A stretch of 64,000 nucleotides of DNA, taken from Isurus oxyrinchus (taxonomy: Eukaryota). Positions 31,719 to 58,035 of this stretch are shown piece after piece. Below the pieces are notes generated by a model. That model was not told the origin of the DNA and did no database searches. It saw nothing but the letters and a program-made list of their open reading frames with translations. Position 1 is the first letter of the stretch. Every line of letters begins with the position of its first letter. Location: the NCBI GenBank assembly GCA_026770705.1, contig JANJGN010000071.1:434001-498000 (forward strand), given 5' to 3'. A program made the position numbers and the translations under genes.

Positions 31719-33219
31719 AGAGCTAGATAGATTCTTGATTAACAAGGGGGTGAAAGGTCATTGGGGGTAGGCAGGAATGTGAGGTTGAGGTGACAATCAG
31801 ATCAGCCATGATCTTACTGAATGGCGGAGCAGGTTCGAGGGGCTGAGTGACCTACTCCTGATCCTAACTCAGATATCCATATGTTCTCAAAGGCAAATGG
31901 GGATGGGCAACAAATACTGGCCTAGTCAGCGACACCAACATCCCTGAAATGAATAAGAAAAAAATGTATCAATCAATTAAATTTATTGATTAATCGAATT
32001 GAAATTCCTCCAGCTGCCGTGGTGGGATTTGAACCCGTGCCTTCAAAGCATTCACCTGGGCCTCTGGATCACTGGCCTAGTGCCATTCCCATTGTGCGAC
32101 TGTCTGCTATCATCATGGCTCTTTCACATCGATGTGGAAGTCCTGATAACAGAAGCATTGGACGAGGTACAGGAAGGTGACAAATCAGGAGCTCCATTGC
32201 TCAATATGAACGGATAATAAAGATAAATGAACATAAACCTTCCAGTCGCTAATTAGGGAGTCACTGTGGAGCCCATGAGTCCCTCGCAGCGCTATTGCAA
32301 CCTTCTGGATCCCCAGTAGGGGACTCGGGGTGCAGCTGTGTCTTCCTCATCATTTGGAAAAGCCGGAATTGTTCGGGTGCCCCTTCAAACAGGCCGAAGA
32401 TGCAGTGGGTGATGTCTCCCACAGGCCCTGGGAGACCTCCCCTGCCAATTTGTTTTGTAGCTTATTCTTCAACTGCGACATTGGATCAGCTTGAAAAAGG
32501 GTGGGGCTGAGGCAATACCACCAGGTAAGCGTCTATCCCCTCACACGTCACCCCCCCCCACCCCCGTAACCATCACAGTCCCTCCCATCGTGCTGGAGGA
32601 GCATAATGTGCACATTCCCCTCCTTCCAATCAGTCTCCTCCCTTCCTCTCTAATCCTTGATCTTATTGTGTTGGGGGTTGACATGCCAGTCCTCCTCCCT
32701 AGACTGTCTGATGTTGACATCCCAATGCCCCATGTAGACCTGACCTCTCTCCAACTAGAGGCCCATTGTACTGTGACTTACAGAGACCACCGGCCCCCCT
32801 CGATTCCCACCCCCACCCCTACTCTCTATATTACCTGCTCCCCACTGACAGGCTGCAGATGCCTCCCCTGACTGGGATTGTGCCACCTGCGGCCTAGTAT
32901 CAAGCCACCCACCCCCAGGACCGACGTGTGTGAGGGACTGACCACGTCACTCACACCATGCTGGGCACCACCAACCCAGGACTGCCAGGCTCTCCCCACC
33001 ACACTGGACTGGGCCTAGAATAGGCGTGCCAAGCACAGCTCTCTAAATCGTGGCGCAGACCCACAGCACTCGCAATGTTTTGTGGCCCGAATCCTTGCTG
33101 AGGAACTGCCCAGCACTAAAAGCAAAAAAACTGCAGATGCTGGAAATCCAAAACAGAAACAGAAACAGAAATACCTGGAAAAACTCAGCAGGTCTGGCAG
33201 CATCGGCGGAGAAGAACTG

Positions 33220-33565
33220 AGGTAGTGCGGCACTGTCGGAGGTTCAGTACTGAGGGTGTGCTGCACTGTCGGAGGGTCTGAGCTGAGGGAGTGTTGCACT
33301 GTCAGAGGGTCTGAACTGAGGGAATGCTGCACTTTCGGAGGCTCTGAACTGAGGGAGTGCTGCACTGTCGGAGGCTCTGAAATGAGGGAGTGCTGCACTG
33401 TTGGAGGGTTTGAACTGAGGGAGTGCTGCACTGTCAGAGGGTATGAACTGAGGGAGAGCTGCACTGTCGGAGGGTTTGAACTGAGGAAGTGCTGCACTTT
33501 CGGAGGGTCTGATCTGAGGGAGTGCTGCACTGTTGGAGGGTTTGAACTGAGGGAGTGCTGTGCTG
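33220..33565. repeat. 33-bp minisatellite, variant unit (gggtctgaactgagggagtgctgcactgtcgga)
   Basis: About 10 units sharing locally homogenised substitutions. Confidence 0.9.
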
Positions 33566-34298
33566 TCTAAAGAACATTGTACAAATTGCACAAAATTGTA
33601 TCTGATGCCTGTGTCTCATGCTAACATGAAGTTCATGCACACAACAGGAATATTTCTCGCTGTTTCTCTGCAGCAAGACAGCTTTGGTATCACACCAGCC
33701 ACTGGCAAGTGTGTGCAGTTACAATGTGACATGTTTACATTGGAAATTTCTATTATAAAGATGGACAGAGGAATTCATCTGATTGGAAAACGTGACAACA
33801 GGAAGTAATGTCTTTGAGCCAAGTATTTTGCAGCAAAACAAGAATTTTAATCTTTAAATATCTACAGAACAGGCTGAGCATTTTAATCACTTGAGTTAAT
33901 CAATGTAATTTTATTCATAAGCCAAATGCTTCTTACAATCTATCGCAGCATGAAAAAGGTGCAGCATTCAGAAAGCTCATTCCAATCAGAGAACAGAGTT
34001 TAGCGACGTCACATTTCTGTTCATTCCTATTCGATGAACAATTTCAAAAGGAAATTGGACGGAAATTGGAAATAAATTTGCAGGGATACGGGGATAGAGC
34101 GGGGGATGGGACTGAGTGGATTGCTTTACAGAGAGACAGCATAGACTCAATGGGCCAAATGTCCTCCTCCATTGCTGGAATGACTCGATGATACGGAGAT
34201 GATTCTAACCAGGACACTGACCAGTTTCATTACAACTTAACACAACATCACACGTTATTTGTCCGCACTGACTGACCAGATTGTTGCTGTACAAAGCT

Positions 34299-34438
34299 TC
34301 AAACAGTCTGTCGACTTCCTTTCACTGTTTGTCTCTCCCAGACACAGACTCCAGCGATAGTGATAACCACAGCCACAAGGAATATCACAGCTCGTATTCC
34401 CAGGATCAGGATCACGTGCAGAATCTCTCCTCCACTGT
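34299..34438 (-). CDS. Gene D: terminal TM exon with intramembrane Arg and short Tyr-free tail (activating type)
   Basis: tttctttctgtgtgttctctag|AC AGT GGA...GTT TGA; (D)SGGEILHVILILGIRAVIFLVAVVITIAGVCVWERQTVKGSRQTV*; Arg codon at 34392-34394; AATAAA downstream at 33910-33915 (-). Confidence 0.85.
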
Positions 34439-35552
34439 CTAGAGAACACACAGAAAGAAATCATCACTGACTCTCCGCTTTCAATCTCTCACTCTGGCTG
34501 AACAATCAAGCTTCATATCACTGCAACATTTGCTGTAATATTGACCCATCCACTGGGATTCAATGTGGAATGAATGTTTTCACTGTAAACACTCTAAGAG
34601 TGGACAATCGGAACTTTCCCCTTAGCGTGGAACATTGGTGAGAATGGATCATTGTGCTGTTGGACTCTCTGTCCAATGTTTCTCTCCATCGCTGTGTACA
34701 GGATTGTGCTGTAGAAAATTCTGGAAACGTTTAGTGCAGGGTGGAAATCCATCTCGGACGCGTGTGCGAATCGGGCAGGATCGAGATGGACTCCCCCACG
34801 GACTTACACACCCCGCTTAATAAACAGTTCCAATCTTTACCCAGAGGGAGGGGAGAATGTGGAACTCGCTCCCACAGGGAATGGTTGAGGTGAATAGTAG
34901 CAAATTAGGAAGTGAAATTGCTTGAAAAGCTTGGAGATGCAAGGGTTAAGTGTTACCGTGCTACCACTGGTGGGAGAGTGTAACTACAGCGTGACGTTTA
35001 CATAGGCAATCCCCATTATGAACATGGACATCATGTGAAAAATGGGCACTGGAAAGCTGAGAACTTGATGTAAGCTTTTCAGCAACAGGAATTCCCTTCC
35101 TTAACCTCTCCACTTCCCTCTTACTCTCAGATACTCAAACAAAATTTCACACAAAATCACGTAAGGAGGAATTGGGACAGGTGACTGGTCAAAGAGTTAG
35201 ATTTCAGGAAGGTTCTTAAAGTAGGATAGAGAGTTGGAGAGGCAGAGAGTATCTGTGAGTAACTCTGTGCATCTGAGTGTCTGTAATAGACTTTGCAATT
35301 TCCATATTCTTCCATAAATATGAAAGGGAACACAAATCCCAGAATCCAGGTCAACTCTCCGGTGCAGCACTGAGGGAGGTCAGGTAATCCACAGGGGAGT
35401 ATGTGCTAGTGTGTTTGTTTGTGAGTGTGCCTTTGTGTGTGCTCATAGATGTGGGATTGTTTGTCTGCAGGTGTCTATTTAAGGCTGGATATTTATGTGT
35501 GTTTTTGTAGTGTTTCAATCTGAGAGAGATGTTGAAGTTTGCCTTAACTAAC

Positions 35553-35704
35553 GTTCCACAGTGATGGTTATGAACCCCTCCACTGCTCCATGTTCATTCT
35601 CTGAGCACACTGATAGTCTCCAGTGTCCCTGGATGTAATGTGAGGAATCACCAACCACAGCTCATTGTTGGAACTTGTTCTGTTCATTGTGATATTCAGA
35701 TGTC
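35553..35704 (-). pseudogene. Gene D: dead C2 exon (3' half only, frameshifted), nearly identical to gene A C2 exons
   Basis: HLNITMNRTSSNNELWLVIPHITSRDTGDYQC, then a 1-nt deletion (gctcagag vs gtggcagag); 5' half and acceptor absent. Confidence 0.85.
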
Positions 35705-36027
35705 AGGACCGGACTCAACAAGGCAGATTGCAGGTTTACCAACAGAAAGTGAACAACAATTTATATTTAAAGGGAAGAGAGTGCTGGTTAATCAGCAAGT
35801 GGTCTCTGATTGGAGGAGGTGTTGCCATGGTAAATAATGTGTGTGAGATGTAAAGTTTAGACAGCTTGTCTCTTCATTCAGCAACAATCAAATAAAGATC
35901 AGTTAACTTCTATCGACTGTGAAGCACTTTGAGAGGCATGAGAATGTGGACACTGAGAACGGGCTGCACTGTCAGAGGGTCAGCGCTGAGGGAGTGCTGA
36001 TGTAGAATGAAGGGTGTCCGTTCTTAC

Positions 36028-36315
36028 CTTGCACAGTTAGTATGAGGGTCCGCTCCGATGAAACAGATGGATATCTCACTCTGCAGCTGAGAGTGTGTCC
36101 GTGGTGTTTGAGTGATGGGATCAGGGTCAGAACAGAAGTATAGGTCAGAGTGACACCATGCTGAGTTACAGTGTTTGAGACTGATCCAGGTACGTCAGTG
36201 GGAGTGTCCCAGGTTAAGACAGGTGCTGCTGTTCCATTGCACGTTGTGTTGAAGGTGCAGCTTACATCCACACGCTTTCCTGCAATAATTTCAGCAGGGA
36301 ATATCGTGGGTTTAT
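36028..36315 (-). CDS. Gene D: Siglec domain-2 (C2-set) exon
   Basis: cacag|AT AAA CCC...GTG CAA G|gtaaga; 288 nt, phase 1-1; DKPTIFPAEIIAGKRVDVSCTFNTTCNGTAAPVLTW...HGHTLSCRV with the extra interdomain Cys typical of Siglec domain 2. Confidence 0.85.
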
Positions 36316-36782
36316 CTGTGACACATGTGGAGATATTAGTGACAGCTGGCCAGAAGAGGTCGGTGTTATGGAAAGACAGAGAGAAAGAGACAGAGAGACA
36401 CAGCGAGAGAGAGAGAGATAGGGAGAGGAAGAGGGAGAGGGAGAGGTTTAGGGTGGGAACTCTAGGGTGGTGAAAGGCGCTGTAGAAATGTAAATCTTTC
36501 TTCTGTCGATATGTCAGACTTCAAGACAGGATTTGAGAGATTGATGGGAGTGGATAAACTGATAACATTGATGGACACAGTCAACACATTTAATCATTGA
36601 TATTAAAGTAAGTATTAGAGGTTGCTTTAGGACTGAACTGGAAGCTATCATCAGGTTATTGAGAATCAGACAGTGTGTTATAATAACCTGTGTTTTGTGT
36701 TAATATGTAAATGTCACAGTTTGTGTTATTTCCCATTGAGTGTTGGATGTGAACTGTTGAGTAATTATAACACAGCACTTAC

Positions 36783-37151
36783 CAGAAACGTGAAGCTGAG
36801 TTACAGGGTAATAGTTATGGCTCGGACCATTGTCAAATTCTATTCTGAAAAAATAAGGTCCTGCATCTTCCCGTCTGATGTTGTTTATAATCAGGGAACA
36901 GTCGCCATCTTTCAGGTCTCCAGACAGCCGGATCCGATGGTGGAACCGTGGTAACTCGTGACTGTGATCCTTGGAGTGAAAGGCAATGGGAGCCCAGGGA
37001 ATCTGTTCCTCATTATTAAACCAGACTCCACCTCGCGGTTGGTTTTCCAGACACGATGGATAACTGTAATGACATGGAATCTGTACACAGGAACCTTCCT
37101 GAGCTGTCACCTCTCGTGGAGTGTCACCTTTCCACTCTTGTGACAGTCCAA
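36783..37151 (-). CDS. Gene D: Siglec V-set exon V1 (essential Arg present)
   Basis: ttctctccccag|TT GGA...TCT G|gtaagt; 369 nt; SCVQIPC, GDLKDGDCSLIINNIRREDAGPYFFRIEF. Confidence 0.93.
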
Positions 37152-39082
37152 CTGGGGAGAGAAATCTCAATATTTATCTCTGGATGGCTTGTGGATCCAC
37201 TAGACTCAAAATTTACAGATGAGGCTGAATTGGGGGGATGGTCAATACTGAGGAGAATGGCAACAAATTATTTTGGCAGGAAGAATAGAAAATCAGAATA
37301 TTATTTAACTGGAGACAGGCTGCAGAATGCAGTACAGAGGGATCTGGGTGTCCTTGTACATGAATCACAGAAAGTCAGCATTCAGGAAAACCATGGAATG
37401 AGGAAGGCAAGTGGAATGTTGGCCTTTATTGCAAAGGGATGGAGTATAAAAGGAGGGAAGTCTTGCAACAGCTGCACAGGGCGTTAGTGAGATTTTAACA
37501 GGATCATTGTGTGCAGGCAGTTCAGAGAAGCTACACTGGGCTGATTCCTGGGATTAAAGGGTTTGTCCTGTGAGGAAATGTTGAGCAGGTTGGGCCTGTA
37601 TCCATTGGAGTTTAGAAGAATGAGGGCTGACCTTACTGAAACATATCCGATTCCGAGGGGGCTTGACAGGGTGGATGCTGGGAGGATGTTTCCCCCTCGT
37701 GGGGGAATCTAGAACCAGGGAGCACAGTTTTGGAATGAGTGCTCTCCCATTTAAGACTGAGATGAGGAGGAATTTCCTCTCTCAGAGGGGCGCTAGCCTG
37801 TGGAATTCTCTTCCCCAGAGAGCAGTGGAGGCTGGGCCATTGAATAGACTCAAGGCTGAGTGAGGCAGGTTTTTGATCGACAAGGGAGTCAAGGGTTTGG
37901 GGGACAGGCAGGAAAATGGAGTTAAGGCAACAACCAGATCAGTGAGAGCATGCTCGAGGGGCCGAATGGCCTGCTCCTGTCCCTGTTTCTTATGTTCCTA
38001 CATTCTTACCATCTTAAAATATTAAAGCTGCAGAATAAACATGCAAGTGACTGACCCGCTCGACCCACCTTCCATCTGGGGGTCCCATGGGGAGGACCCT
38101 TCCTGAGCCAGATCCACCAGCCAACATGGTCTAGATCTGAGCACAGGAGACACTGGGGGGAGTGACTAACAGGCTCCTTGTGACAGGCCCCGTCTGTCCA
38201 ATGGCTGGCTTTCAGCTGCCAAGGCCAGAGTGGTCCTTGCTAAAACCGGCTCAGGACAGGCCAGGACCCCTGTGCAGACCCCCTCCAGCGCTGCAGCCTC
38301 TGTACAAACCCCTCATGCGCTTGTGGAGAGACACAAACAAGGCTGCTCATTACCGAGGAGAATCCCCTCTACAGACTAAGGTGCTGACTCATCACCCTAA
38401 ACTCGGCAAATGAGGAGGCTCTCGCTCGGTATCGGGGCTTGGCATTCGCTCAATAAAAATAATCAAATGACATTTTGGTCAGAAATCTAAGGAGGTTGTA
38501 CATTCCCTCAAAAATAAGACTCGATCTGGGGTCGAGAGTCAAAGGGCAACAACTTATATTTTCACAACAACTTTAACATGACAAATCACCTCAAGGTGCT
38601 ACACAGGAGCGTCATAAAACAAAGTATGTCACCCAGACACATGTAGATATTAGCGACAGCTGACCAGAAGAGGTCGGTGTTATGGAGAGACAGAGATAAA
38701 GAGACAGAGAGAGAGAGAGAGGGAGAGGAAGAGGGAGAGGGAGAGATTTAGGGTAGGAACTCTAGGGTGGTGAAAGGCGCTGTAGAAATGTAAATCTTTC
38801 TTCTGTCGATATGTCAGACTTCAAGACAGGATTTGAGAGATTGATGGGAGTGGATAAACTGATAACATTGATAGACACAGTCAACACATTTAATTATTGA
38901 TATTAAAGTGAGTATTAGAGGTTGTTTTAGGACTGAACTGGAAGCTATCACCAGGTTATTGAGAATCAGACAGTGTGTTATAATAACCTGTGTTTTGTGT
39001 TAATATGTAAACGTCACAGTTTGTGTTATTTCCCATTGAGTGTTGAATGTGAATTGTTGAGTAATTATAACACAGCACTTAC

Positions 39083-39451
39083 CAGAAACGTGAAGCTGGG
39101 TTACAGGGTAATAGTTATGTCTCGGACCATTGTCAAATTCTATTCTGAAAAAATAAGGTCCTGCATCTTCCCGTCTGATGTTGTTTATAATCAGGGAACA
39201 GTCGCCATCTTTCAGGTCTCCAGACAGCCGGGTCCGATGGCGGAACCGTGGTAACTCGTGACTGTGATCCTTGGAGTGAAAGGCAATGGGAGCCCAGGGA
39301 ATCTGTTTCTCATTATTAAACCAGAGTCCACCTCGCGGTTGGTTTTCCAGACACGATGGATAACTGTAATGACATGGAATCTGTACACAGGAACCTTCCT
39401 GCGCTGTCACCTCTCGTGGAGTGTCACCTTTCCACTCTTGTGACAGTCCAA
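39083..39451 (-). CDS. Gene D: Siglec V-set exon V2 (essential Arg present)
   Basis: Copy of V1 offset by 2300 bp; 7 substitutions in 369 nt; splice sites intact. Confidence 0.93.
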
Positions 39452-41184
39452 CTGGGGAGAGAAATCTCAATATTTATCTCTGGATGGCTTGTGGATCCAC
39501 TAGACTCAAAATTTACAGATGAGGCTGAATTGGGGGGATGGTCAATACTGAGGAGAATGGCAACAAATTATTTTGGCAGGAAGAATAGAAAATCAGAATA
39601 TTATTTAACTGGAGACAGGCTGCAGAATGCAGTACAGAGGGATCTGGGTGTCCTTGTACATGAATCACAGAAAGTCAGCATTCAGGAACACCACAGAATG
39701 AGGAAGGCAAGTGGAATGTTGGCCTTTATTGCAAAGGGATGGAGTATAAAAGGAGGGAAGTCTTGCAACAGCTGCACAGGGCGTTAGTGAGATTGTAACA
39801 GGATCATTGTGTACAGGCAGTTCAGAGAAGCTTCACTGGGCTGATTCCTGGGATTAAAGGGTTTGTCCTGTGAGGAAATGTTGAGCAGGTTGGGCCTGTA
39901 TCCATTGGAGTTTAGAAGAATGAGGGGTGACCTTATTGAAACATATCCAATTCCGAGGGGGCTTGACAGGGTGGATGCTGGGAGGATGTTTCCCCCTCGT
40001 GGGGGAATCTAGAACCAGGGAGCACAGTTTCGGAATGAGGACTCTCCCATTTAAGACTGAGATGAGGAGGAATTTCCTCTCTCAGAGGGGCGCTAGCCTG
40101 TGGAATTCTCTTCCCCAGAGAGCAGTGGAGGCTGGGCCATTGAATAGACTCAAGGCTGAGTGAGGCAGGTTTTTGATCGACAAGGGAGTCAAGGGTTTGG
40201 GGGACAGGCAGGAAAATGGAGTTAAGGCCACAACCAGATCAGCGAGGGCAGGCTCGAGGGGCCGAATGGCCTGCTCCTGTCCCTATTTCTTATGTTCCTA
40301 CATTCTTACCTTCTTAAAATATTAAAGCTGCAGAATAAACATGCAAGTGACTGACCCGCTCGACCCACCTTCCATCTGGGGGTCCCATGGGGAGGACCCT
40401 TCCTGAGCCAGATCCACCAGCCAACATGGTCTGGATCCGAGCACAGGAGACACGGGGGGGAGTGACTAACAGGCTCCTTGTGACAGGCCCCATCTGTCCA
40501 ATGGCTGGCTTTCAGCTGCCAAGGCCAGAGTGGTCCTTGCTAAAACCGGCTCAGGACAGGCCAGGACCCCTGTACAGACCCCCTCCAGCGCTGCAGCCTC
40601 TGTACAAATCCCTCATGCGCTTGTGGAGAGACACAAACAAGGCTGTACATTACCGAGGAGAATCCCCTCTACGGACTAAGGGGCTGACTCATCACCTTAA
40701 ACTCAGCAAATGAGGAGGCTCTCGCTCGGTATCGGGGCTTGGCATTCGCTCAATAAAAATAATCAAATGACACTTTGGTCAGAAATCTATGCAGGTTGTA
40801 CATTCCCTCAAAAATAAGACTCAATCTGGGGTCGAGGGTCAAAGGGCAACAACTTATATTTTCACAACAACTTGAACATGACAAATCACCCCAAGGTGCT
40901 ACACAGGAGCGTCATAAAACAAAGTATGTCACGCAGACACATGTGGAGATATTAGCGACAGCTGACCAGAAGGGATCGGTGTTATGGAGAAACTTAAAAG
41001 AGGGATGAAATGGTTAGTGAGAGAGAGAGAGTGAGTGTGAGGGATGGAGAGGGCTTAAGGGAGGGTATTACAGAGCTCGGTCCCCAGGCAGCTGAAGGCA
41101 TGGCCACCGATGTTAGAGTGTTGAGATCGGGGGATGGTCAAGAGGCTGGAATTGGAGGAGCGCAGAGACCTCTGAAGGTTGGTG

Positions 41185-42600
41185 GGTCTGGAGGAGGTTA
41201 CAGAGATAGCGAGGGTTGTAGGGGCTGGAGGAGGTTACAGAGATAGCGAGGTTTGTAGTGATTGGAGGAGTTATAGCGATAGGGAGGTTTTTAGGGACTG
41301 GAAAAGTTAAGAGAGATTGGGGAGTGTAGGGTCTGGAGGAGTTTGCAGAGGTAGGGAGGGTTGTAGTGACTGGGGCAGGTTACAGGGGCAGGGAAAGTTG
41401 TCAGGACTGGAGCAGGCTACAGAGATAGGGAAGCTTTTAGGGGCAGGAGGAAGTTACAGAAATAGGGAGGTTTGTAGTGGCTGGAGGAGGTTGCAGAGAT
41501 TGGTAGGTTTGTTGGGCAGGATGAATTTACAGATATAGGGAAGCGGTAGAGGCTTGAAGAGGTTACAGAGAATGGGATGGTTGTAGGTACTGGAGGAGGA
41601 CGAGGAGATTACAGGGATAATGAGGAAACAAAGATGAAAATTTGGACATTGAGACTTTGCTTGACCAGGAGCCAGTCTCGGTCATCGAGCAGAGCGGGTG
41701 ATAAGGGAACGGGACTTGGTGTGAGTAAGGACGTGGTCAGCAGTTTTGGATGGCCTCAAGTTTATGGAGTGTAGAGCGTGTGTTGGAACAGTCGAGACTG
41801 GAGGTAATGAAGGCGTGGATGAGGGTTTCAGCAGCAGATGAGCTGAGACAGGGTGACGTCGTGCGATGTTACGGAGGTGGAAATAGACGGTGTTAGTGAG
41901 GGCGCAGATATGAGGCCGGAAGCTCATCTCAGGATCAAATGGGACAACAAAGCTGTGAACAGATTGGCTTCAATCTCAGAGAGCTGCCAAGGAGAGGAAT
42001 GGAGTTGGTAGCGAGGGAACAGAGTTTGGAGCGGGGAATGAAGACAATGGCTTCAGTCTTTCCAATATTTAATTGGAGGGAATTTCTGCCCATCCAGTAC
42101 TGGATGTCGGATAAGCAGCCTGATAATTTAGCAGCAGTGGAGGAGTCGAGAGAGGTGGTGGTGAGGTAGAGCTGGGCATCCTCAGTGGACAGGTGAAAAC
42201 TAACACTGTTCAGATGATGCTGCAAAGCCATTGCAAGTGATTCTCTGGCTACGATGAGATGGATAAGAATGGAGCCAGGGGAGAGCAGTCCCACCCAGCT
42301 GGACGACAGTGGAGAGGTGTTGGAGGAGGATGGTGTGGTCGAGCGTGTCAAAGGCTGCAGACAGATCGAGAAGGACGAGGAGGGAAAGTTGACCTTTGTC
42401 ACAGTCACACAGGATGCCATTTGTGACCTTGATAAGAGCTGTTTCAGCACAGTGGCTGGGGTGGGAACCTGATTGGAGGGATTCAAACATGGAGTTCCGG
42501 GAAAGATGGGAACAGATTCGGGAGATGGAAACAGGTTGCAGGACTTTGGAGGGGAAAGAGAGGCTGGAGATGGGACGGGGGTTTACACGGACAGTGTGAG
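41185..42600 (-). mobile_element. L2 LINE RT fragment with degenerate 37-bp minisatellite at its 3' end
   Basis: RPISSLSFPSKVL...ETALIKVTNGILCDCDKGQLSLLVLLDLSAAFDTLDHTILL; LQLNIGKTEAIVF. Confidence 0.85.
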
Positions 42601-42854
42601 GGGTGAAAGGTGTAGTGGGGAGGAGATACTTCACTCAGGGGGCAGGTGTCATCACCCCTCAGCTCGGTTTATGTTACAGCTATGATGTGGATTCAATCAC
42701 ACACAATAAGCTTATGGATCTGGGAGCAGAAATAGACAAATCATTAAAAATAGTGGCGCTGGTTAACACAGCCAAAAAACAAGCAAATCAAACACTATTA
42801 TTTCCCATTGAGTGTTGGATGTGAATTGTTGAGTAATTATTACACAGCACTTAC

Positions 42855-43229
42855 CAGAAACGTGAAGCTGGGTTTCAGGACGGTCGTTGTATCTATTCCT
42901 GTTGTCAAATTCTAGGCTGAATAAATAATATCCTGCATCTTCCCGTCTGATGTTGTTTATAATCAGGGAACAGTCGCCATCTTTCAGGTCTCCAGACAGC
43001 TGGGTCCGATGGTGGAACTGTGGTAACTCGCGATTATGATCCTTGGAGTGAAAGGCTATAGACCGTTCATTCCATTTTTCCCAATTCCTTCTCATATACC
43101 AGATTCCGACTGGTGATCTCGCTACTAAATATGATGGATAACTGTAATTACATGGAATCTGTACACACGAACTTTCCTGCGCTGTCACCTCTCCTGGAGT
43201 GTCACCTTTCCACACTTGTGATAGTCCAA
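42855..43229 (-). CDS. Gene D: Siglec V-set exon V3 (essential Arg replaced by Ser)
   Basis: ttctctccctag|TT GGA...TCT G|gtaagt; 375 nt, open; EDAGYYLFSLEF. Confidence 0.92.
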
Positions 43230-43632
43230 CTAGGGAGAGAAATATCAATATTTAACTCTGAATGTTTTCTCAATCCACTAGACTCAATATCCACCCCCTC
43301 CATCACTGGGGCACACAGGCTGCAGTCTGGATAATCCACAGGTCACACAATGAATGCCCCAAGGTTTCACAACAGATTGAAGAGAATTCCGGACACAGGA
43401 GTGGACAAGTTCATTCTAAATTGGCTCATGACCCTCAGGTACCTATTTAGTGAAGTCAGTCTGCCACCCAACACAGTGTCTACAAGACACACTAATTGAA
43501 GTGAGTTCACTGCTGATTTACAATGTAGGACAATGGATTAGGAGCCTTCAGAATTCCCCCATTATCACCATCATGAATCATGAATTGGCCTAGCTGTCCT
43601 AGATCCTCAGTGTCTAAGGCAGTGGTTCCTAT

Positions 43633-44558
43633 TGTGATGTAAGTATAATAATTTTCATAATATTTTATAGTATATTGTGAAGTAGGTTTATGGGGGTACG
43701 CGTGATAGGTCTGCATGTGATTTAAGTACATTTGGAGTTAATTAGATTGGAAGTTTAAAATGATCAAAAGGAGCTAGGTGCTTGACATGCTATTGAGGAA
43801 ACATGGATGCTGCTTAGCATGGAAGGTATGAAGAGAATTTGCATTTTTCTATCAATGAAGGGGTTGTTGGATTTCAAAGGAATCTTAGCTTGTTTACAAC
43901 TAGCCAGATAAGCAAGACTAAGGAATGTGTTTATTTTTCTCAAAGGCTCCTGGCAATATGGGCACCACGAAAGAGTTTGTTATGTGGAAGATACAGTTTC
44001 AAAAACATATGGAACAATAGAATTTTCATGTTACAAAGAGAGAAATATATATCTATCAGGGAGAATGAAAGGCTATGTGTCAGAATGCCATGTAAGATCT
44101 AACACGAGTGTGTGATATAGTCTTAATGAAACCTCTAGCATTTGTGCACAAGCCTGCTATCCAACAGAACTGAAGTTGGGGAAAAGCCACTTGGAATTCC
44201 TCTGTGCAGGGTATTGCTTTTATATTGTGTTAACTTGCTGGGTTTGTTTTAAATATAAAGTCTATTTTTGGACCGTTGCCTTAAAGGGAGTGTAACTGGG
44301 AGTCAGTTTAATTCAGAATTTTAAGAATTATTATAGTGGTAATTGTAGAGTTATGTATGTGCTTCAAATCATTTATTTTGAGAGCAAGTATTTTAATTTA
44401 ATTTTCAAATCGCTAAAGGTCTTTGTGTAATTATTGCTTCTGAATTCAGTGCACACATCTCATAATAAATACAAATTGCAAAATCATTATGATCATGTGA
44501 CCATCTTTCTCTCATGGACTTGGTCTGCCTGGCACACATCACCTGCCAAGTGATAACA
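43633..44558 (+). mobile_element. Solo LTR (same family as 8397-9291)
   Basis: TGTGATG...GATAACA termini with ctat/ctgt flanks. Confidence 0.7.
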
Positions 44559-44562
44559 CTGT

Positions 44563-45879
44563 TGTAATATGCCTTTCAGGGACAGCAGCATGACATCACT
44601 CGAGGGGAAGTGTGTCATGTGATTTTAGGAATTGGGTATAGCTTAAGTAAGTTCTATGTGTATTTGTGTGTGTTAGGGATAAGGCATATGTTTATGTTCA
44701 AGTTTAGTTTGATTTCTGTATTTGTGTGTTAAGAAAGGGGGAAACTTCAGTTTTGGTTTCATTTTCGTTTAGCAATCTAATGGGGTTTGATGTCTCTTGA
44801 AGGGAAGTCAAAACAAACACAATGTGTAAGAAACTGTGCTATTGCTAAGCAACAGTGATCCATAGGGACGGACCCATAGAGACAGAGAAAAACAGAAATG
44901 TGCTTTCAGTTTGGTTGAAAGGAGTTGCCAGGAGAAGCAGCAAAGGAGCGGGACAGATAGTCAGTCCCAAAGTAAAGAAGAAGCCAAAACTATCGAGTGG
45001 AACAGGAGAAAGAGCCAAGAAGACCTTCTACTCCAAAGAAGATCAGGAATCTGAAAAAGGTCCTGTTAAGTCGAGATAAGATTGAGGAGCAGAGGAGGGA
45101 TCCAAGCTAAAAGAGAAAAAGCAAAAGGACACAGACCTAAAGCAAAAAAGGCTTATTAGAAGCCAGAAGATCATAGGAGACAGCCAAATGTTGATGTCTT
45201 CTTACTATGACCATGTGAAGCCATGGTGTTCCATTGGCATGACTGAGCATTGGAGAGACAACGCGTAGAAGGAAGGCTGAATGCATGTGGCGATCCAGGG
45301 GGCAGGAACATGGGAAGGAGAGTTTGAAATCGTGGAAGTGGACCCTTGTGGAAGGTCTCTGAGTGAAAGTGTCATGTTAGAGAAGATTCCAAAGAGAGCA
45401 CTTGGTGAGTAGAGATTGGAAACTCTCATGTGAAAGATACAGTTTTGTAAGACCAGTTGCCTCATGGTGAAACAAGTGTCTGGAGTCAGTTGAGCTGAAA
45501 CCCATAGCATTTGTTCCAATTGGGGTCTATCACTTGGTTACAGAATGTGGTGTCCCTGACACCAGGTCGTCTATTGGTTTGCATGAACTGTGTACTTAGT
45601 GTGAACATGAGAGTATAAGATAGTTATTGTAACTTGTATTCTACTTATGAATCTGTAAATGTATAGGTCTGGGTGAAGGAGTAATGTAATATAGTTTGTC
45701 TTTCCTAGTTTAATAAATGTTTTATTCTTTTGTTAGAAGGTCATCAGATGATTCCTGTGACTCTGTTCAGTAGCAGCACTCCACATTCCTAAATAAAAAA
45801 TAAAAGTTAGGACCTATCAAGCTGAGTTCCACCCTGGGATCTGACTTGCCCAGTAGTAACATCAGCTGGGATGATAACA
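44563..45879 (+). mobile_element. Second solo-LTR-like element
   Basis: TGTAATA...GATAACA termini, AATAAA near the 3' end; inverted copy at 63477-64000. Confidence 0.6.
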
Positions 45880-46123
45880 TCATCCAGTCCAAGTTTCACT
45901 TTGGCCTGTGAGCAGAACACAGCTCACACAGTTTGGCTGCAGGTGTCTCCCAGCTTTCTATCCTTGTACATCTGTTCTCATGTCCCCATTCTAAATAACT
46001 GAACCCACAATGTATTTACCCAATTCCGTATCAGTGGCTGGTGCCTTTATATCATTATAAAAACACAACATGGTGATCAGCGGTGGCCAAACATTCTGGC
46101 CGCAAGATTCAGTACAGGTATGA

Positions 46124-49100
46124 TGTGGTGAACAGCCTGAGATCGAGCTACATGACATGAGATGACCCTCGACGCTTTGGTCAGACCACAACAGAGACAC
46201 AGCATCAGAGAGGGTTGAAATCGCAGTGTACTGACTCTCAGGAAACCTTTGAAGACACAGTGACGGGAAAGAGCTCAAGTAAAGAGCTGGGGAGCAGACG
46301 GATCCCTCGTGGTGGGATTACAGCACACGGCCTGTAGGTCAGTGAGTGGGATAGTGTGTATCGCCAGGACCAGCAGCGGGTTAGCTCAGTCAGGGAAGGC
46401 GAGTGACCAGGGTGTGGGCTGGATCGATAGTGAGCGAGGGAGAGTCAAACACACAAAAACCATTATAAAAATCAGCCCAGAGAAGTTAGTGATTATAACG
46501 GGCGGCTTCGAGATTGCTGAACAGCAAATTGAATAAAAAACAAAGACTCCATTACTCCGTGGTGTGTTCCTGCCGCAACCCATCTTCGTGGGCGGAGCTT
46601 CGGAAAAGCACGTGAAAGGGGCTAAAGCGACACTCATCCCAGGTCCTGTAGGAGAAGGAAGGTCAAAGGAATATTGTCAGAATGTCCACAAAATTCCCCA
46701 GTTTGAACTGGGATGTAGCTGACCGACTATCTGAATTCAGAATGTTTAAACAGCGTACAGAACTCTGGTTTCCTGATTCTGGTGTGACTGAACCAGACGA
46801 ACCACCCATAAAAATTCACCTCGCGATTGGGAATGAAGGTCTACACAGGCTGAAGACATCAGGATTAACAGCAGAAGAGCGAAAGGATCCCCAATAGACA
46901 CGGACGGTATTGGAAGACAGTTTCAGAATCAGGTGAAACTCCAAATTCATCAACTAGAGTTTATGTCATTTCATCAGCCGACACAATCCATAGACCACTT
47001 CATCAGCCGATGTAGAGAAAAGGGTACGCACTGTGATTTCAAACACAGAGCCTGCAGACAGAGTTGTTGAGTTGGCGATCGCATCCACTCCCATGGAAGC
47101 CTTCCAGAAAGATCTGCTAGATAAGACCAAAACCTATAGCATTGAAGAGCTACTCAAGGATGGACATAAATACGAAGTAATCCTCGCAGGTCAACGAAGC
47201 TTACAGGTCCTCAGTACAACATCAATTGTTGACACACTCACTAGCACATCCAAACCTAGTGAGACGTGTGGCAGGCACCAAGGAAATCCCCAGCTTTCCA
47301 CCAATCCTGCAAGGCTTGTAGCAGAAAGGGCCATTGACAGCAGCAGGGCACTAGAGCAAAGGCTGATGCAGCTACAAAGAGCCGTGCGCTGATCCAAACA
47401 GACCCTACACAACGGGGAACCTTCAAGCAATAAGAATGACCATCCGCTATCCCATCAGGAACATATACATGTGGTGACTGACAAGCCAGGAAATGGCGAT
47501 GATGTGCATGACGAGACGAGGTGCGGTGATCGATATTCCACCTCTCACACATATCCTGACGTGGCTTGCCAATAAATTGTGGATTGTTGTCCTTCATGAT
47601 ATCTCTGGGCACATCAAAGAAACTGAAAATGTCCCATAGGTGTTAGATTTTCTGGCCCCACCCACTGCCAGGATTGTCCGGTCCGGCCGAAAGCCAATGG
47701 ATTTATATTTGTCCCAATCTCCCACGGCAGGTCCCACCATGACTGGGCCGGAAAACCCCGGCTTAGAGTTTTTGCAACACTTGTGCTCAACGTATTGTGC
47801 AACTGTTGAACAATTTCACACCTATTACACCATCAATCTCATGGAGAACAGATGCCGTCACTTCACCCGCACTATTGGCCAAGATTCCAATTATCTGCCC
47901 TGAGAAAGTTTCTACCTCCCCTTTATTGGCCAAGATTGATACAGGGACAAGTGCCAACATTCCCCTCCCCCAGCCCACCCCAGCAAATTTTCAAAGACAT
48001 ATATCCAAGGACATGGAAGTCCATGGGGAAACCTACTGCTGTGTACAACACTTCACCAACTCCATGTGCAGAATCCATAGTCCTAGAGTGCAAGTACAAT
48101 CAATCTTCCTGGGTGTCACAGATGTTCTACATCGTGCAGAATAAAGGCTGAGCAATTGCAAGTCTACCAGCATGCGGTGACCTCACACTAGTGACAATCC
48201 ATGGAATCTGTCAGACCTCACATGGGTCAACCTCAGAAACTACCCCATCACCTCAATTCATTGACATAACATTGAAATATGCAGAAAGTTTCAACAATAT
48301 TGGCAGTTTCAAGGGAGCTGCAACATTACACCTGCAGGAGAATGCAAGTCTGTCAATTGATCCAGTATATTTAGCACAACAGAAATGACAGCAGCTACAA
48401 AAGGGAACAGTGAAAAATTCTACAGGAACTGGGGAAATATCATTGAAAGGGTGGCCTGATTCAGCTTGACCTCATCGGGATAAGTGAGGCATCTCCCAGG
48501 GAACCATTTTTAATGGCAGGCAGGGCATTATACCGGAGCCTTTGTGATCCTATATTCTTCAACAACTTCATCCCTCACACATGGGCACAGATCAGACAAG
48601 GAGACTCACAAGAGATATACTCCCTGGCCGGTTATGAAGAATGACCTTGAAGTCGTTGTAGGGAAGTACGAGGCTTGTCAAGAGGATGAGCCAAGTCAGC
48701 ACAAAGAACCACTGATTCCACAGGAAATTCCTGCCCATTCTTAGTCCAAAATCAGGTCTGAATCCTTTCATTTCCATGTCACTGACTTCATCATCATCGT
48801 CGACAGCTTTACCAGATATCCCGTTATTCAAAAATAGCACAACACACCAAGCACAACTGGTGCACACACTCTAAGCACTATTTTCAGTTTATTTGGTGAG
48901 CCTAGGGACATGATTACAGATAATCTGGAATATCAATCACACTACTTCTTCTCCTCATTACCCCAGATCTAACAGCCTCGCTGAATGAATGATTCACACA
49001 GTGAAATCCCTAATTCTCAAATGTAGACAGGCCAAGCAAGATCCACACATTGCAATGTTACATCTGAGATCGACACCTACAACTGCAACTTTGTTAAATT

Positions 49101-49933
49101 CATTCATGGGATGTGGGAGTCACTGGCCAGGCCAGGATTTATTACCCATCCCTAATGTAAGAGTCAACCACATTGACGTGGAGTCTGGAGTCACATGTCG
49201 GCCAGACAATTTTGTTCCCTAAACGGCACTGGTGAACCAGGTGGGATTTCCAACAATGGTTTTGTGGTCATTGCTAGACTTTGAATTTCATATTTTTATT
49301 AAATTCAAATTCCATCATCTATTATGGTCAGATTAGAACCCATATTCTCAGGCCATTACCCTGGGTCTCTGAATTACTCATCCAGCAACAATACCACTAC
49401 ACCATCACCTCACCTTATTCCATCACTGACAGAGAGCATGTTTGGTGGGCCAGTAGTGACCAATTTCGCTACTCTTACCCATTCTACTCTCTCAGAAACC
49501 AGAGGGCAACTTTTAAAACTACAAGAGAAGATAAGGAATGTTCATGATAAAAATGGAGGTGCAGAGTTGCCAAGTTTACAGTTGGGACAAGTTCACATCC
49601 AGCATCCCACAGAAGGTTCATGACCACCAGCCGAGGTGACGAGGATTTGTTCAGAACCAAGGGCCTATGGAGTCAAACACACAAGGGCACAGCGGTGAGG
49701 CGGAACCAAGGATAAATCAGATCCATTCCCGCTCCTATTCCATCGAGGAGAAGATCCCACATGAAATCAGGAACAACATCCAAGGATGACAATCCCACAG
49801 ATCACTGTGAGCAGTTAAAGACACCTCCGGACAAGGGAACCAGCACAAGATCTGGGTGTACCAGAAGGTTAAATCCACACTTTAGAGAGTCAAATATTCA
49901 ACAGTTCCGTACACTTATGTAATTGTCAATAAA
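46124..49933 (+). mobile_element. Internally deleted Ty3/Gypsy element (gag, protease, integrase remnants; no recognisable RT)
   Basis: MSTKFPSLNWDVADRLSEFRMFKQ gag start, KIDTGTSANI protease, SSPHYPRSNSLAE...VKSLILKC integrase; absent from the inverted paralogous copy near 63240. Confidence 0.8.
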
Positions 49934-50828
49934 TATGAACATGATATGAGAAACCGCTTGTTCCCTGCCCTTCTGAAAGAGCCATTCCTGCAGCGGGAGC
50001 CTGAAGAGTTACTGATAAGAGATTTAATTTATTGGATTGTAGAATGATCCGGAACTGAAGGAAGCCATTTGGCCCATCGAGGATGTGCTGGGCCTTTGAA
50101 AGATCTGTCCAATTAGTCCCACTCTCACCTCTGATCTCTCCCCCACAGCCCTGCAAAATGTCCCCTTCAAATCAAATCAAATGTATACAACATAATAAAG
50201 CCTCTGTGGACACTATACAATTATTTTGAAATCCAGCTTTTCTAAGCTCATTAAAGCTGTTTTCAGGTTTGAACTAGAGTTAGACAATCAGCCCAATGTT
50301 GCTTCACAGAATGATTTGAAATTCATGGTGAGAATGGACAGGAAGTGTGACACTGAACAGCCTGTCTATTCTAGGAGCTGCTGTGTTGTCTTCATGGGAA
50401 ATTCTTTTTAAAATCAGCAAAAGGCACAAATTTCAGATTATTGCTATCAGGATCCTAGAACCTGGATAGATTTCATCCCCCAGTTTTTATCCCTGATTTT
50501 CAGCTCAACCCATCCCTCCCCATCTCTCACTGACCAACACCTGACATCACCTGAAGTTTAAGATTCTGCTCTCGCTGCTACAATCCTGCCTAACCCTGTA
50601 ACCTCCTCCAGCCCCTACAACCCTCTGAGATCTCTGCTCCCCTCCAATTCTGCTGTCATACAGGGAGTCAGTGTATATCAGTGAGCATAGGGGTGATGGG
50701 TGAATGGGACTTGGTGTGAGTTTGTACACTGGCTCACTGCTGAATCAGTTCCCAGTCACAGCTCAATAAGAATGATCTTTTACGAAGACTATTGACCATA
50801 AATCTGTCCAAGCTGACGATGATATTAC

Positions 50829-50868
50829 CTTGGAAAAGTGACAGGAAGAAGTAAGATTTCCCGATCAT
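50829..50868 (-). CDS. Gene D: signal-peptide exon, proximal copy (MIGKSYFFLSLFQ)
   Basis: Exon 50910-50829; acceptor tctctttcag, donor CAA G|gtaata; phase 1 joins any V exon (..FQVGLSQEW). Confidence 0.85.
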
Positions 50869-51312
50869 TGTCCACTCATAGATATTCCATCAGCTTCTAA
50901 CTCTGAAGTTCTGAAAGAGAAAGGAGTTAATGAGACTTCACCTCTTGTCCGACAGCTCTCGAGAGATCAGAACTGCTTTTAGACAATGTCTTCACTGACT
51001 AATTTGATTCACGGTGGGATGATAGATGCTCTGCAGAGAGTTACAAGGTTTTAAGGAAGAAAAACAATGAAGGATTTGCATTTCTATACAACCTTTCACC
51101 TCCTCAGGGCATCCCAAAGCTCATGTCACTCCACTTCCCTCGCCCCTTGAGCTAGAAGGATGTTCTGTATGACAGACTTGACCCTCACACCCAGATCTCA
51201 ATAATCATTAGAAATCTTTCAAAGGCATCAATCATTGGAGTCTGTCTTCATAAAGTCACAACATCAACAAAGGACGGTGTTGGAAGTGAATTCCAATCAT
51301 TCCGTTACTTAC

Positions 51313-51455
51313 CCAGGACCTGTCCGACTGCTCGCCTGGGGAGGAACTGCCCACACGCTCTGCTTGGGCTGAATGACCTCTTCCTGTGCTGCTCCCTCTG
51401 TGTATTTAATTAGAAAGAGCTGATGTGTCACTGTGAGACAAAAAGAGGAAGTTGG
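51313..51455 (-). promoter_or_regulatory. Gene D: proximal promoter and non-coding first exon
   Basis: Consensus donor CCTGG|gtaagt at 51313; PU.1-like aaagaggaagt near 51442; block repeated at 53066-53205 and 61600-61742; TSS not determinable. Confidence 0.5.
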
Positions 51456-52589
51456 AACAAAGTGAGTGAACAGCACTTTGCTGTGCACTGTCAGTAAACC
51501 CTGTGTCTGTATAAGAATATAAGAACAGAACAAGTAGGATCAGCTGGACACCCTGATATTTTCATTCCCTATATTCCATCAACTCATTTTTTTATCTACT
51601 CACTGAAACTATTTATCTCCCTCTGCAGCCTCTTTGTGTCCTCCTCACAACTTGCTTTCCTGCCCAGCTTATATATTTCCTACCTATCTTCACCATACAG
51701 TCAGAAAATCTGTCTACAATACAGTCAGTCCCTTCATCCAAGTCACTAATGTAGATTGTGAATAGTTGAGGCTTTGAAATATCTGTCTAATTATTCCCAC
51801 GCTCAGCTCTACTCTCTCCTCCAAAGCCCTGCAAAATGTCCCCTTCAAGTATTTATCCAGTTCCCCTTCTGAAAGTTCCTGTTGAATCTGCTTCCACCGC
51901 CCTTTCAGGCAGTGAGTCAATGGTCTCTCTCTGAGCTGCAAAGTGCTAATGTTCTGTGAAATTTAAACTCTGCAGCAGATCAGAGACAATTATGATAACT
52001 CAGAATATTTGACAGTTTTACACACAGACAGCTTTACCTTCCTTCTCTCTTTCAGTTATCTTGCTCCCTTATTGAAGTTTCTAGCAAGGTGAGAATGGAC
52101 AGGAAGTGTGACACTGAACAGCCTGTCTATTCTAGGAGCTGCTGTGTTGTCTTCATGGGAAATTCTGACTAAAATCAGCAAAGGATACAAATTTCAGGCC
52201 ATTGCCATCAGAGTCCTAGCACCTGGATATATTTCATCCCCCAGTTTTTATCCCTGACTTTCTGCTCAACCCATTACTCCCCGTCTCTCACTGACCAACA
52301 CCCGACATCACCTGAAGTTTAAGATTCTGCTCTAGCTGTAACAATCCTGCCTAATTGGGTAACTGTCTCCAGCCCCTACAACCCTCTGAGATCTCTATTC
52401 TTCTCCAATTCTGCTGTCAGACAGGGAGTCAGTGTATTTCAGTGAGCACAGGGGTGATGGGTGAATGGGACTTGGTGTGAGTTTGTACACTAGCTCACTG
52501 CTGAATCGGTTCCCTATCAGAGCTCAATAAGAATGCTATTTTACAAAGACTATTAACCATAAATCTGTCCAAGCTGACGATGATATTAC

Positions 52590-52629
52590 CTTGAAGAAGT
52601 GACAGGAGGAAGTAAGATTTCCCGATCAT
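52590..52629 (-). CDS. Gene D: signal-peptide exon, distal copy (MIGKSYFLLSLLQ)
   Basis: Exon 52671-52590 with intact AG/GT; part of a ~1.76-kb tandem duplication. Confidence 0.85.
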
Positions 52630-53065
52630 TGTCCACTCCCAGATATTCCATTAGCTTCTCACTCTCAAACTCTGAAAGAGAAAGGAGTTAATGAGACCTC
52701 ACCTCTTGTCCGACAGCTCTCGTGAGATCAGAACTGCTTTTAGACAAGACTTACTTGATTCTCCATGGGATGAGAGGTGCTCTGCAGAGAGTTACTAAGC
52801 TTTCAGAAAGAAAAACTATGTAGGGTTTGCATTTCTGTAGCACCTATCACCACCTCAGTATGTCCCAAATCTCATGACCCTGCACTTCCCTCATCCCTTG
52901 AGCTAGAAAGATGTTCTGTACAACTTGAGCCTCACACCCAGATCTCAATAATCAGTAGAAATCTTTCAAAGGCATCAATCATTGGAATCTGTCTTTATAA
53001 AGTCACAACATCAACAAAGGACGGTGTTGGTGGTGGAAGTGAATTCCAATCGTTCTGTTACTTAC

Positions 53066-53205
53066 CCAGGACCTGTCCGACTGCTCGCCTGGGGAGTAAC
53101 TGCCCACACGCTCTGCTTGGGCTGAATGACCTCTTCCTGTGCTGCTCCCTCTGTGTATTTAATTAGAAAGGGTTGATGTGTCACTGTGAGACAAAATGAG
53201 GAAGT
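53066..53205 (-). promoter_or_regulatory. Gene D: distal promoter and non-coding first exon
   Basis: Duplicate of 51313-51455 with donor at 53066 and GAGGAAGT ETS core. Confidence 0.5.
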
Positions 53206-53269
53206 TGGAACAAAGTGAGAGAACAGCACTTTGCTGTGCACTGTCAGTAAACCCTGTGTCTGTATAAGA

Positions 53270-57360: not shown

Positions 57361-57609
57361 TCAGTTTCTCTTGAATCTGATCTGTGCGTATTCCGTCTGC
57401 TCTTCCCTGTGGACAGACCCATCACCACTGGGCACCCTGAAGACTTGGGGATTGGTGTAGAGAAGGTCGTTGGGATTGTCGGGGTTCCCATGTCCAGCAT
57501 CGCCTCCCACTGGACCTTCAGAGAGACCCCGGGGAGCTGGGGTCTCCCCCTCACTAGTTGTATCTCTGGTTGTGTTCCGGGGCTCAGTAATCAGCACGTT
57601 CTGTTTACC
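57361..57609 (-). CDS. Orphan terminal cytoplasmic exon (LLYTNP; TEYAQI)
   Basis: 249-nt open paralog of 7857-8105 with intact acceptor; 3' UTR homology continues at ~56500-56655; no TM or Ig exons linked to it in the window. Confidence 0.7.
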   Translation of the reverse strand, partial: GKQNVLITEPRNTTRDTTSEGETPAPRGLSEGPVGGDAGHGNPDNPNDLLYTNPQVFRVPSGDGSVHREEQTEYAQIRFKRN

Positions 57610-57754
57610 CTACAGAGAAACGGAAACAGAAGGCATCCTCACATCATTTACTGGCACTGATAGGGTTAAATTATTCTGCAGCCTCGTTAGTATCAGTCGT
57701 GGGTCAGTGGGTTTAACCCTCTCTCACATGTTTTATGAAAGAAAACACCTATGG

Positions 57755-58035
57755 CAGTGCAGTGCTCCCTCAGTACTGACCCTTCGATAGTGCAGCACTT
57801 CCTCAATGCTGACCATCCAACAGTGCAGCACTCCCTCAGTACTGACCCTCCGACAGTGCAGCGCTCCCTCAGTACTGACCCTCCAACAGTGCAGCGCTCC
57901 CTCAGTACTGACCCTCCGACAGTACAGGTCTTCCTCAGTACTGACCCTCTGACAGTGCAGCACTCCCTCAGTACTGACCCTCTGACAGTGCAGCACTCCC
58001 TCAGTACTGACCCTCTGTCAGTCTCACACTCCCTC
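57755..58035. repeat. 33-bp minisatellite in the paralogous last intron
   Basis: Same unit and same relative position as in gene A. Confidence 0.9.

Follow-up and report, generated by a model that had tools for sequence, protein, structure and literature searches.

Organisation of the locus

We describe gene D, a minus-strand gene with the hallmarks of the Siglec family, in a stretch of 64,000 nucleotides from the shark Isurus oxyrinchus (assembly GCA_026770705.1, contig JANJGN010000071.1, positions 434,001 to 498,000 of the forward strand). This whole stretch is hereafter the window, and all coordinates count from its first base. Gene D ends in a transmembrane (TM) exon with an arginine inside the hydrophobic span, and an original prediction, made from the letters alone, cast it as an activating receptor paired with an inhibitory one, gene A, on the plus strand of the same window. 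Gene D spans about 50.9 kb to 34.3 kb of the window and all of its exons are in phase 1. Its nearest proteins are RefSeq models of Carcharodon carcharias (white shark), Cetorhinus maximus and Scyliorhinus, at 84-98% identity, none of them identical. Its features are as follows.

34299-34438, minus strand: last coding exon, with stalk, TM segment with intramembrane Arg, and a 12-residue tail free of Tyr; encodes DSGGEILHVILILGIRAVIFLVAVVITIAGVCVWERQTVKGSRQTV, then TGA at 34301-34299
35545-35704, minus strand: dead relic of an A-type C2 exon, the type repeated in gene A; 3′ half only, with a 1-bp deletion and without an acceptor
36028-36321, minus strand: C2-set exon corresponding to Siglec domain 2 and bearing the extra Cys, starting at 36321 or 36315; Pfam C2-set_2, 2.6e-9
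36320-40950, no strand given: tandem duplication of a 2316-bp unit holding V1 and V2, 95.7% identity, its proximal breakpoint abutting the C2 exon
36783-37151, minus strand: V-set exon V1 (YFFRIEF), phase 1-1, proximal copy of the tandem duplication
39083-39451, minus strand: V-set exon V2 (YFFRIEF), joined to leader and C2 exon in contigs
42855-43229, minus strand: V-set exon V3 (YYLFSLEF), with intact splice sites
50829-50868, minus strand: proximal leader exon, ATG at 50868, MIGKSYFFLSLFQ plus 1 nt, donor GTAATA
52590-52629, minus strand: distal leader copy, ATG at 52629, MIGKSYFLLSLLQ plus 1 nt

The C2 exon of gene D (36028-36321) occurs once within the window. V1 and V2 are 96% identical, and V1 is 98% identical to the V domain of the activating C. 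carcharias model P0016. V3 groups with the first V domain of the two-V models P0012, P0013 and P0014. Both leader copies read MIGKSYF(L/F)LSL(L/F)Q plus one nucleotide, with the donor GTAATA.

The leaders lie in a segment of 1.4 kb that is present three times, at 50324-51772 and 52085-53525 on the minus strand and inverted at 61589-62768, with 86-91% identity. An out-of-frame upstream ATG (MEYLGVDNDRE...) was taken by NCBI as the start of the white shark models P0035 and P0050. The segment 37289-37709 was considered as a leader or promoter and ruled out, being a repeat that recurs at 16497-16968 and meets a stop after 18 codons. Transposon open reading frames (ORFs) fill parts of the V3-V2 and leader-V3 introns (41935-42634, minus strand; 46682-49623, plus strand), and comprise a LINE-type reverse transcriptase fragment and gag/pol-like sequence.

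An arginine inside the membrane anchor

The last exon of gene D is preceded by a pyrimidine tract and an AG acceptor (34440-34439). It begins at 34438 in phase 1, which the phase-1 donor of the C2 exon at 36028 fits. It contains the peptide ILILGIRAVIFLVAVV (34365-34412, minus strand), and its buried Arg is preceded by 10 apolar residues and followed by 18. In hydropathy, all of the best windows of 19-23 residues include the Arg. The apolar run is followed by the tail ERQTVKGSRQTV, 12 residues with no Tyr, and then by the stop codon. By sequence, the gene product combines a basic residue inside the TM segment with a short tail lacking Tyr motifs, the combination that characterises activating-type receptors. 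Sequence and frame confirm the predicted end of gene D at 34299-34438; the ORF listed for this exon (34255-34467) is indeed in another frame, as had been remarked.

This exon is 91-96% identical to the C-termini of the C. carcharias models P0001, P0016 and P0017. It was also considered as a mutated copy of an inhibitory TM exon, an origin that we rejected, there being no similarity past the first 'DS'. Within the window there is no second Arg-bearing TM exon. Nor, on the minus strand downstream of gene D within the window, is there any exon with a neutral TM segment or an ITIM (immunoreceptor tyrosine-based inhibitory motif).

Transcript structure

Contigs of four public runs (X1, X2, X4 and X6) were aligned over 34250-40249. 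A single sample of organism A supplied three of the runs and organism B the fourth, two studies being represented, and the contigs speak to transcript structure while giving no measure of abundance. In all four runs a joint connects 34438 with 36028, skipping 1589 bases with minus-strand GT..AG ends, which is precisely the predicted splice between the C2 and TM exons. In X1, X4 and X6 the V2 donor is joined directly to the C2 exon, with V1 skipped (39083 to 36321). In X1, furthermore, a loose end at the V2 acceptor (39453) reads like a leader. The main transcript is leader-V2-C2-TM(Arg). A protein with two V domains from this gene is backed by one joint in X6, from the V2 donor to the V1 acceptor (39083 to 37151), with a side of 23 nt. 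The Arg exon is thus spliced to the immunoglobulin (Ig) exons in four runs and two studies, and the scenario held out as fatal to the original prediction, in which the two are never spliced together, can be set aside.

The proximal leader (ATG 50868) appears the likelier first coding exon, because the leader sequence that X1 carries on V2 shows 1 difference in 30 bases to this copy, against 3 in 30 to the distal copy (ATG 52629). The earlier placement of the gene start at 52629 had picked the distal of the two copies and needs to be moved, 50868 fitting the contigs better.

At the other end, contigs with the TM exon extend to 34277. All of them stop there, just before a GT (ctg/gtcagt) and 22 nt past the stop codon. 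This may mark an intron in the 3′ untranslated region, or a branch between spliced and unspliced forms.

Siglec identity of the ectodomain

Family searches were done exon by exon. The V-set exon matches Pfam V-set at 4e-12 and Ig_CD22 at 2.6e-9, and its top 17 matches among solved sequences are all Siglecs, from Siglec-5 (8e-16, the best) to sialoadhesin (2e-12). Against solved structures it scores 1e-13 to 1e-16 with Siglec-5, -7, -8, -10 and CD33, 2e-13 with MAG, 2e-12 with sialoadhesin, 9e-7 with Siglec-15 and 5e-5 with CD22. CD33-related members score best, with MAG and sialoadhesin close behind.

The motif YFFRIE of V1 and V2 aligns on the sialic-acid-binding YFFRVE of Siglec-5, and the three V-set cysteines align as well (SCVQIPC...DCSL on LCVLVPC...NCSL). 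In V3, Ser replaces the essential Arg (YLFSLE) by a single base change, AGA to AGC. The C2 exon can be aligned with the second domain of MAG and of CD33, and its additional interdomain Cys is retained, with VSCTFNTTC placed on VSCMVPDNC of MAG and on LTCSVSWAC of CD33. Judged by these V-set and C2 hallmarks, gene D is a true member of the Siglec family. The Siglec-like identity first proposed for it holds, with Siglec-5 the best match, to exon V2, at 8e-16. The inhibitory members of the cluster, namely gene A and two orphan tail exons, carry a membrane-proximal ITIM (LLYTNI-type, one of them LLYANP) and a distal motif of the immunoreceptor tyrosine-based switch motif (ITSM) type, TEYAQI. The same motifs are found in the models P0014, P0021, P0030, P0035 and P0050.

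Of the activating Siglecs, Siglec-15 alone is known to persist from fish to mammals, and gene D might be its shark orthologue. The two share the V-C2-TM architecture with a basic TM residue, and the NCBI pipeline has named some ray relatives 'Siglec-15'. Those ray models, however, end in ITIM/ITSM tails, and gene D sits in a multigene cluster of ITIM/ITSM siblings beside a hepcidin gene. Further, its V exon matches Siglec-15 at 9e-7, against 8e-16 for Siglec-5 and 2e-13 for MAG, and its anchor has Arg and not the conserved Lys (PMC7226832). On the V score and the Arg in place of Lys we rejected this orthology, which we regard as extremely improbable.

Activating and inhibitory twins in related sharks

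The anchor and tail of gene D recur at the C-terminus of the white shark models P0001, P0016 and P0017 and of the catshark models P0002, P0007 and P0056. Some of these have inhibitory twins. In C. carcharias, the ectodomain of the activating P0016, with its Arg anchor, is 90.7% identical over 193 residues to that of the ITIM/ITSM-bearing P0035. In S. canicula, the activating P0002 is 86.8% identical to the inhibitory P0021 over 234 residues of ectodomain, and 79.4% identical to P0007, which is activating like itself. Past the V-C2 ectodomain, activating and inhibitory twins have no sequence in common. The inhibitory siblings are numerous and carry a neutral TM segment (WTVGLLTAGIMLSVFLAGI...), together with LLYxNI and TEYAQI motifs. 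In these relatives, models of the activating and of the inhibitory kind are found together on the same contigs, and a tree of V domains groups them by lineage and not by tail type, with modest support.

Siglec-5/14 (PMC4042635) and Siglec-11/16 (PMC5701461) provide the precedent for paired Siglecs. Read from the sequences, the identities and the tree pattern are the mark of paired receptors maintained in similar form, like these two pairs, and a paired activating and inhibitory system is supported in the relatives of I. oxyrinchus. The original prediction of a paired receptor system accordingly survives for related sharks, with their 87-91% identical ectodomains. It is not supported for gene A as the partner, a claim that rested on a dead exon fragment (described below). 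A search for relatives beyond sharks, made with the tail of an inhibitory model (P0050, residues 216-357), returned shark proteins only, and its word filter makes that blank uninformative.

A shared anchor cassette

The 45-residue Arg exon, searched against 1.84 billion representatives, returned ten matches at E values up to 0.001, of which all nine that are named are shark proteins; outside galeomorph sharks the Arg cassette was not found in this search. Across 14 sequences drawn from Lamniformes, Carcharhiniformes and Orectolobiformes the pattern ILGIRAxIF...V...CV does not vary, and the tail E(R/G)QTVKGSRQTV is kept from lamniform sharks to Scyliorhinus torazame. This anchor is found beneath different ectodomains: Siglec-like V-C2; V-V or V-C2 with extra A-type C2 domains; CD22-like, with as many as eight Ig domains; a lone V domain of the CD22 type; and those of proteins annotated as 'SLAM family member 9-like'. 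It gives the impression of a single anchor cassette that several families of receptors have reused. A shared and invariant cassette of this kind argues for a conserved partner inside the membrane.

We speculate that galeomorph sharks have grafted a mobile 'activating cassette' exon onto at least four kinds of Ig receptor (Siglec-like V-C2, Siglec-like with extra C2 domains, CD22-like multi-Ig and SLAMF9-like), all of which would feed one dedicated adaptor. The Siglec part would then stand as an ancient shark equivalent of the paired CD33-related Siglecs, which are reported to be missing from fish. We give this wider proposal an even chance of being right. That the system evolved independently, as originally suggested, is plausible; the search with the TM cassette returned shark proteins only.

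The skate models P0047 and P0048 end in WKC(I/L)VALIVLAV(V/I)LGVV(T/P)VI(F/V)WAA(R/-)C(-/F)R(S/N)K, a sequence that places a Lys at the TM segment's outer edge and leaves a tail of 8 residues. Batoids may here have an activating-type anchor of another kind.

Proposed mechanism

We propose that gene D encodes an adaptor-coupled activating Siglec with opposing inhibitory siblings, and consider this reading probable, although short of assured; the coupling, the activating output and the binding of sialic acid are its predicted parts. The product would be a type I membrane protein that starts with a signal peptide, continues through one or two V-set domains of the sialic-acid type and a single C2-set domain, and has a short stalk. 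Its anchor would be a TM helix with a buried Arg, followed by the 12-residue tail devoid of signalling motifs. As in Siglec-14 and Siglec-16, the Arg would pair with the membrane Asp of an adaptor dimer bearing immunoreceptor tyrosine-based activation motifs. The protein would be exposed at the surface only together with this adaptor, and ligand binding would give an activating signal. Siblings with nearly the same ectodomain, a neutral anchor and an ITIM/ITSM tail would give the opposite signal.

As to the adaptor, we lean towards the FcR-gamma/CD3-zeta type over DAP12, as a lead and not a result, because the Arg sits 18 apolar residues above the cytoplasmic end, high in the helix. The Asp of FcR-gamma and CD3-zeta likewise lies high in the membrane helix. 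Cutting against this leaning, Siglec-14 pairs its Arg with DAP12. Macaque KIRs with an Arg anchor couple to FcR-gamma and not to DAP12 (PMC8102735).

The protein could instead be a non-signalling, short-tailed decoy, or a modulator of its inhibitory sibling, with the Arg serving retention, turnover or oligomerisation. This would suit the position of the Arg towards the outer third of a long apolar run, and the conserved 12-residue tail hints at a function of its own; the adaptor pairing of gene D, moreover, is itself a prediction. Yet the ILGIRAxIF core stays unchanged through three orders of sharks and no fewer than four families of ectodomain, which fits a shared intramembrane partner. A buried basic residue with a short tail means adaptor coupling in all well-studied cases known to us (PMC7226832, PMC8102735). 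We therefore think a decoy or modulator improbable.

Several points nevertheless weigh against gene D as an adaptor-coupled activating Siglec. Its coupling to an adaptor is argued by analogy and its binding of sialic acid from aligned motifs. In the hydropathy windows, used in place of a formal topology predictor, an Arg-free window of 17 residues equals the best score. No inhibitory partner of gene D was seen within the window of the I. oxyrinchus genome. The public runs were only guessed to be RNA, although their spliced joints argue that they are. Finally, the assembled copy has no canonical C2 acceptor, and it contains a dead exon relic and an Arg-less V3.

The acceptor deserves closer attention. 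The V2-C2 contigs all read ...TTTCTG-ATT-TCACAG..., that is HVS-DFT-DKP, as does every shark RefSeq model. They match 36044-36321 with 0 differences and carry the ATT in front. At 36322-36324, where the contigs have ATT, the assembly has GTG without an acceptor AG, so that the canonical ag/ATT is absent. Because of this discrepancy the contigs may stem from another allele or a paralogue rather than from the assembled copy. There is an in-frame AG at 36317-36316, 9 nt downstream, whose use would cost only three residues (F-T-D). The breakpoint of the V1/V2 duplication falls exactly at the missing acceptor.

A block of about 120 bp ending in CACATGTGTC occurs three times over 36320-41061, before the V2 unit, before the V1 unit and before the C2 exon. 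This pattern suggests unequal crossing-over or a short conversion tract.

Such features invite the view that the assembled copy is a decaying allele or pseudogene of a real family, the transcripts coming from a near-identical paralogue or from the other haplotype. Right at the duplication breakpoint the assembly reads catGTGtcacag, against ag/ATTTCACAG (HVS-DFT-DKP) in every contig and every RefSeq model from sharks. The dead C2 relic, the loss of the essential Arg from V3 and the transposon ORFs that occupy several kb between leaders and V3 point the same way. However, every exon keeps an open frame and canonical sites, that one acceptor excepted, and the AG 9 nt downstream preserves the frame at a loss of three residues. 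Contigs of X4 match the C2 and TM exons with 0 differences, and in intron contigs beside the TM exon just 2 of 310 bases differ. Decay of this copy is accordingly a possibility that we keep in mind but consider unlikely, less so than the decoy; we continue to favour a working activating Siglec.

Gene A and the rest of the cluster

Gene A, the partner first proposed for gene D, contributes the following features to the window.

404-4149, plus strand: repeated A-type C2 exons of gene A
5714-8105, plus strand: gene A, with a neutral TM exon at about 5714-5830 (DSSKWTVGLFTAGIMLSVFLAGIFIFICVRK) and a last exon at 7833-8105 with ITIM LLYTNI and ITSM TEYAQI

Its V and first C2 exons lie outside the window. 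The neutral TM segment (about 5714-5830) and the ITIM and ITSM (7833-8105; LLYTNI, TEYAQI) reported for gene A are borne out. It does not, as had been stated, share a nearly identical C2 exon with gene D, which holds only a dead, frameshifted fragment of 160 bp. This relic (35545-35704), in the C2-TM intron of gene D, corresponds to the 3′ 160 bp of an A-type C2 exon, at 94% identity. One base pair has been deleted from it, and unrelated DNA stands in place of the 5′ half and the acceptor. Contigs over the relic carry an extra base (35605, +A) and, because this is the missing base, derive from intact paralogues. Since the shared sequence is a dead fragment, we rejected gene A as a demonstrated partner of gene D. 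To judge from its sequence, the relic says only that an ancestor of gene D once had an A-type C2 exon before its Arg exon. The models P0057 and P0058 retain an A-type C2 in front of the Arg exon.

Between 404 and 4928 (plus strand), gene A repeats one C2 exon in tandem, in at least four copies with 90-94% protein identity, each followed by a CA/TG-rich microsatellite and an assembly gap. The number of C2 copies in gene A may therefore be uncertain.

Inhibitory-type cytoplasmic exons also occur on the minus strand, at 57364-57627, 59032-59235 and 60317-60550. One is a membrane-proximal exon of the CYCRRKTAMEER type and two are ITIM/ITSM tails (LLYTNP..TEYAQI and LLYANP..TEYAQI). Upstream of them there are no Ig exons, and a plus-strand leader copy is found at 62193 instead. 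All three exons resemble orphan remnants.

In the middle of the cluster, a hepcidin-type mature peptide (QRQKRMGRQQRCRFCCNCCNWRESNETCGLCCRY*) is encoded at 27000-27096 on the plus strand, with earlier exons from about 22265. By analogy with human HAMP, which adjoins MAG and CD22, this hepcidin gene suggests that the cluster may mark the MAG/CD22 region rather than the CD33-related region.

A weaker V-set exon (16896-17303, plus strand; Pfam V-set, 1e-3) is 29-33% identical to V1-V3. It shows a WYKYW motif, lacks the Arg motif YFFR, and is probably part of a different Ig receptor gene in the cluster. Long minisatellites lie at 6684-7664, 26146-26559, 33015-33591, 57733-58089 and 60563-61349. 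They read (STDPLTVQHSL)n in one frame and recur in introns near tail exons, on both strands.

Comparison with known systems

To our knowledge, paired activating and inhibitory Siglecs are known from mammals only. Such pairs are read as the host's answer to sialic-acid-wearing pathogens that engage inhibitory Siglecs. If our reading is true, a shark cluster with both tail types and homogenised ectodomains would mean that this solution to the arms race arose, or already existed, at the base of the jawed vertebrates. The Arg cassette would also offer a direct handle for finding the shark adaptor. What was known already are the gene models, which stand in RefSeq under borrowed names, and the principle of paired receptors itself; the more original point is the Arg cassette shared across shark receptor families. 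Our search of the literature on Siglecs of sharks and other cartilaginous fish, and on adaptors in cartilaginous fish, found no relevant description. The published account for teleosts has only Siglec-1, CD22, MAG and Siglec-15 as regular members and CD33-related Siglecs as lacking (PMC7226832), and a 2025 review of vertebrate sialoglycan-binding proteins leaves sharks unmentioned (PMC13358205).

The closest counterparts are the RefSeq shark models: in C. carcharias P0001 ('myeloid cell surface antigen CD33-like'), P0016 and P0017 (both 'Siglec-12'), and in S. canicula P0002 ('Siglec-14 isoform X2') and P0007 ('Siglec-13'). They have the same leader, DFTDKP V-C2 junction, Arg anchor and tail, and are orthologues or close paralogues of gene D, but they are automatic predictions under names borrowed from mammals.

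Siglec-15 resembles gene D in its V-C2-TM architecture with a basic residue and is found in fish (PMC7226832). It differs in having Lys and not Arg, a longer tail, and a single conserved gene instead of a clustered pair, with a V similarity of 9e-7. Human Siglec-12 has two V-set domains and has lost its Arg in humans (PMC13358205). It is matched by the relatives P0011-P0017 of gene D, modelled with two tandem V-sets, by the Arg-less V3 and by the one V2-to-V1 joint. Siglec-12 itself is inhibitory.

In Siglec-16, paired with Siglec-11 and subject to gene conversion (PMC5701461), the ectodomains are likewise kept alike while the anchors differ, whereas in sharks gene conversion is suggested by identity patterns alone. 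Siglec-14, the partner of Siglec-5 (PMC4042635), shares with gene D a V-set with the essential Arg, an Arg in the TM segment, a short tail, and an inhibitory sibling of near-identical ectodomain in the same cluster, which on the shark side is seen in the relatives. The identity between the two is only about 35-40%, gene D has one C2 domain against two, and its TM cassette has no detectable relative outside sharks. Because the primate Siglec-5/14 pair is young, a separate origin is presumed for the shark gene.

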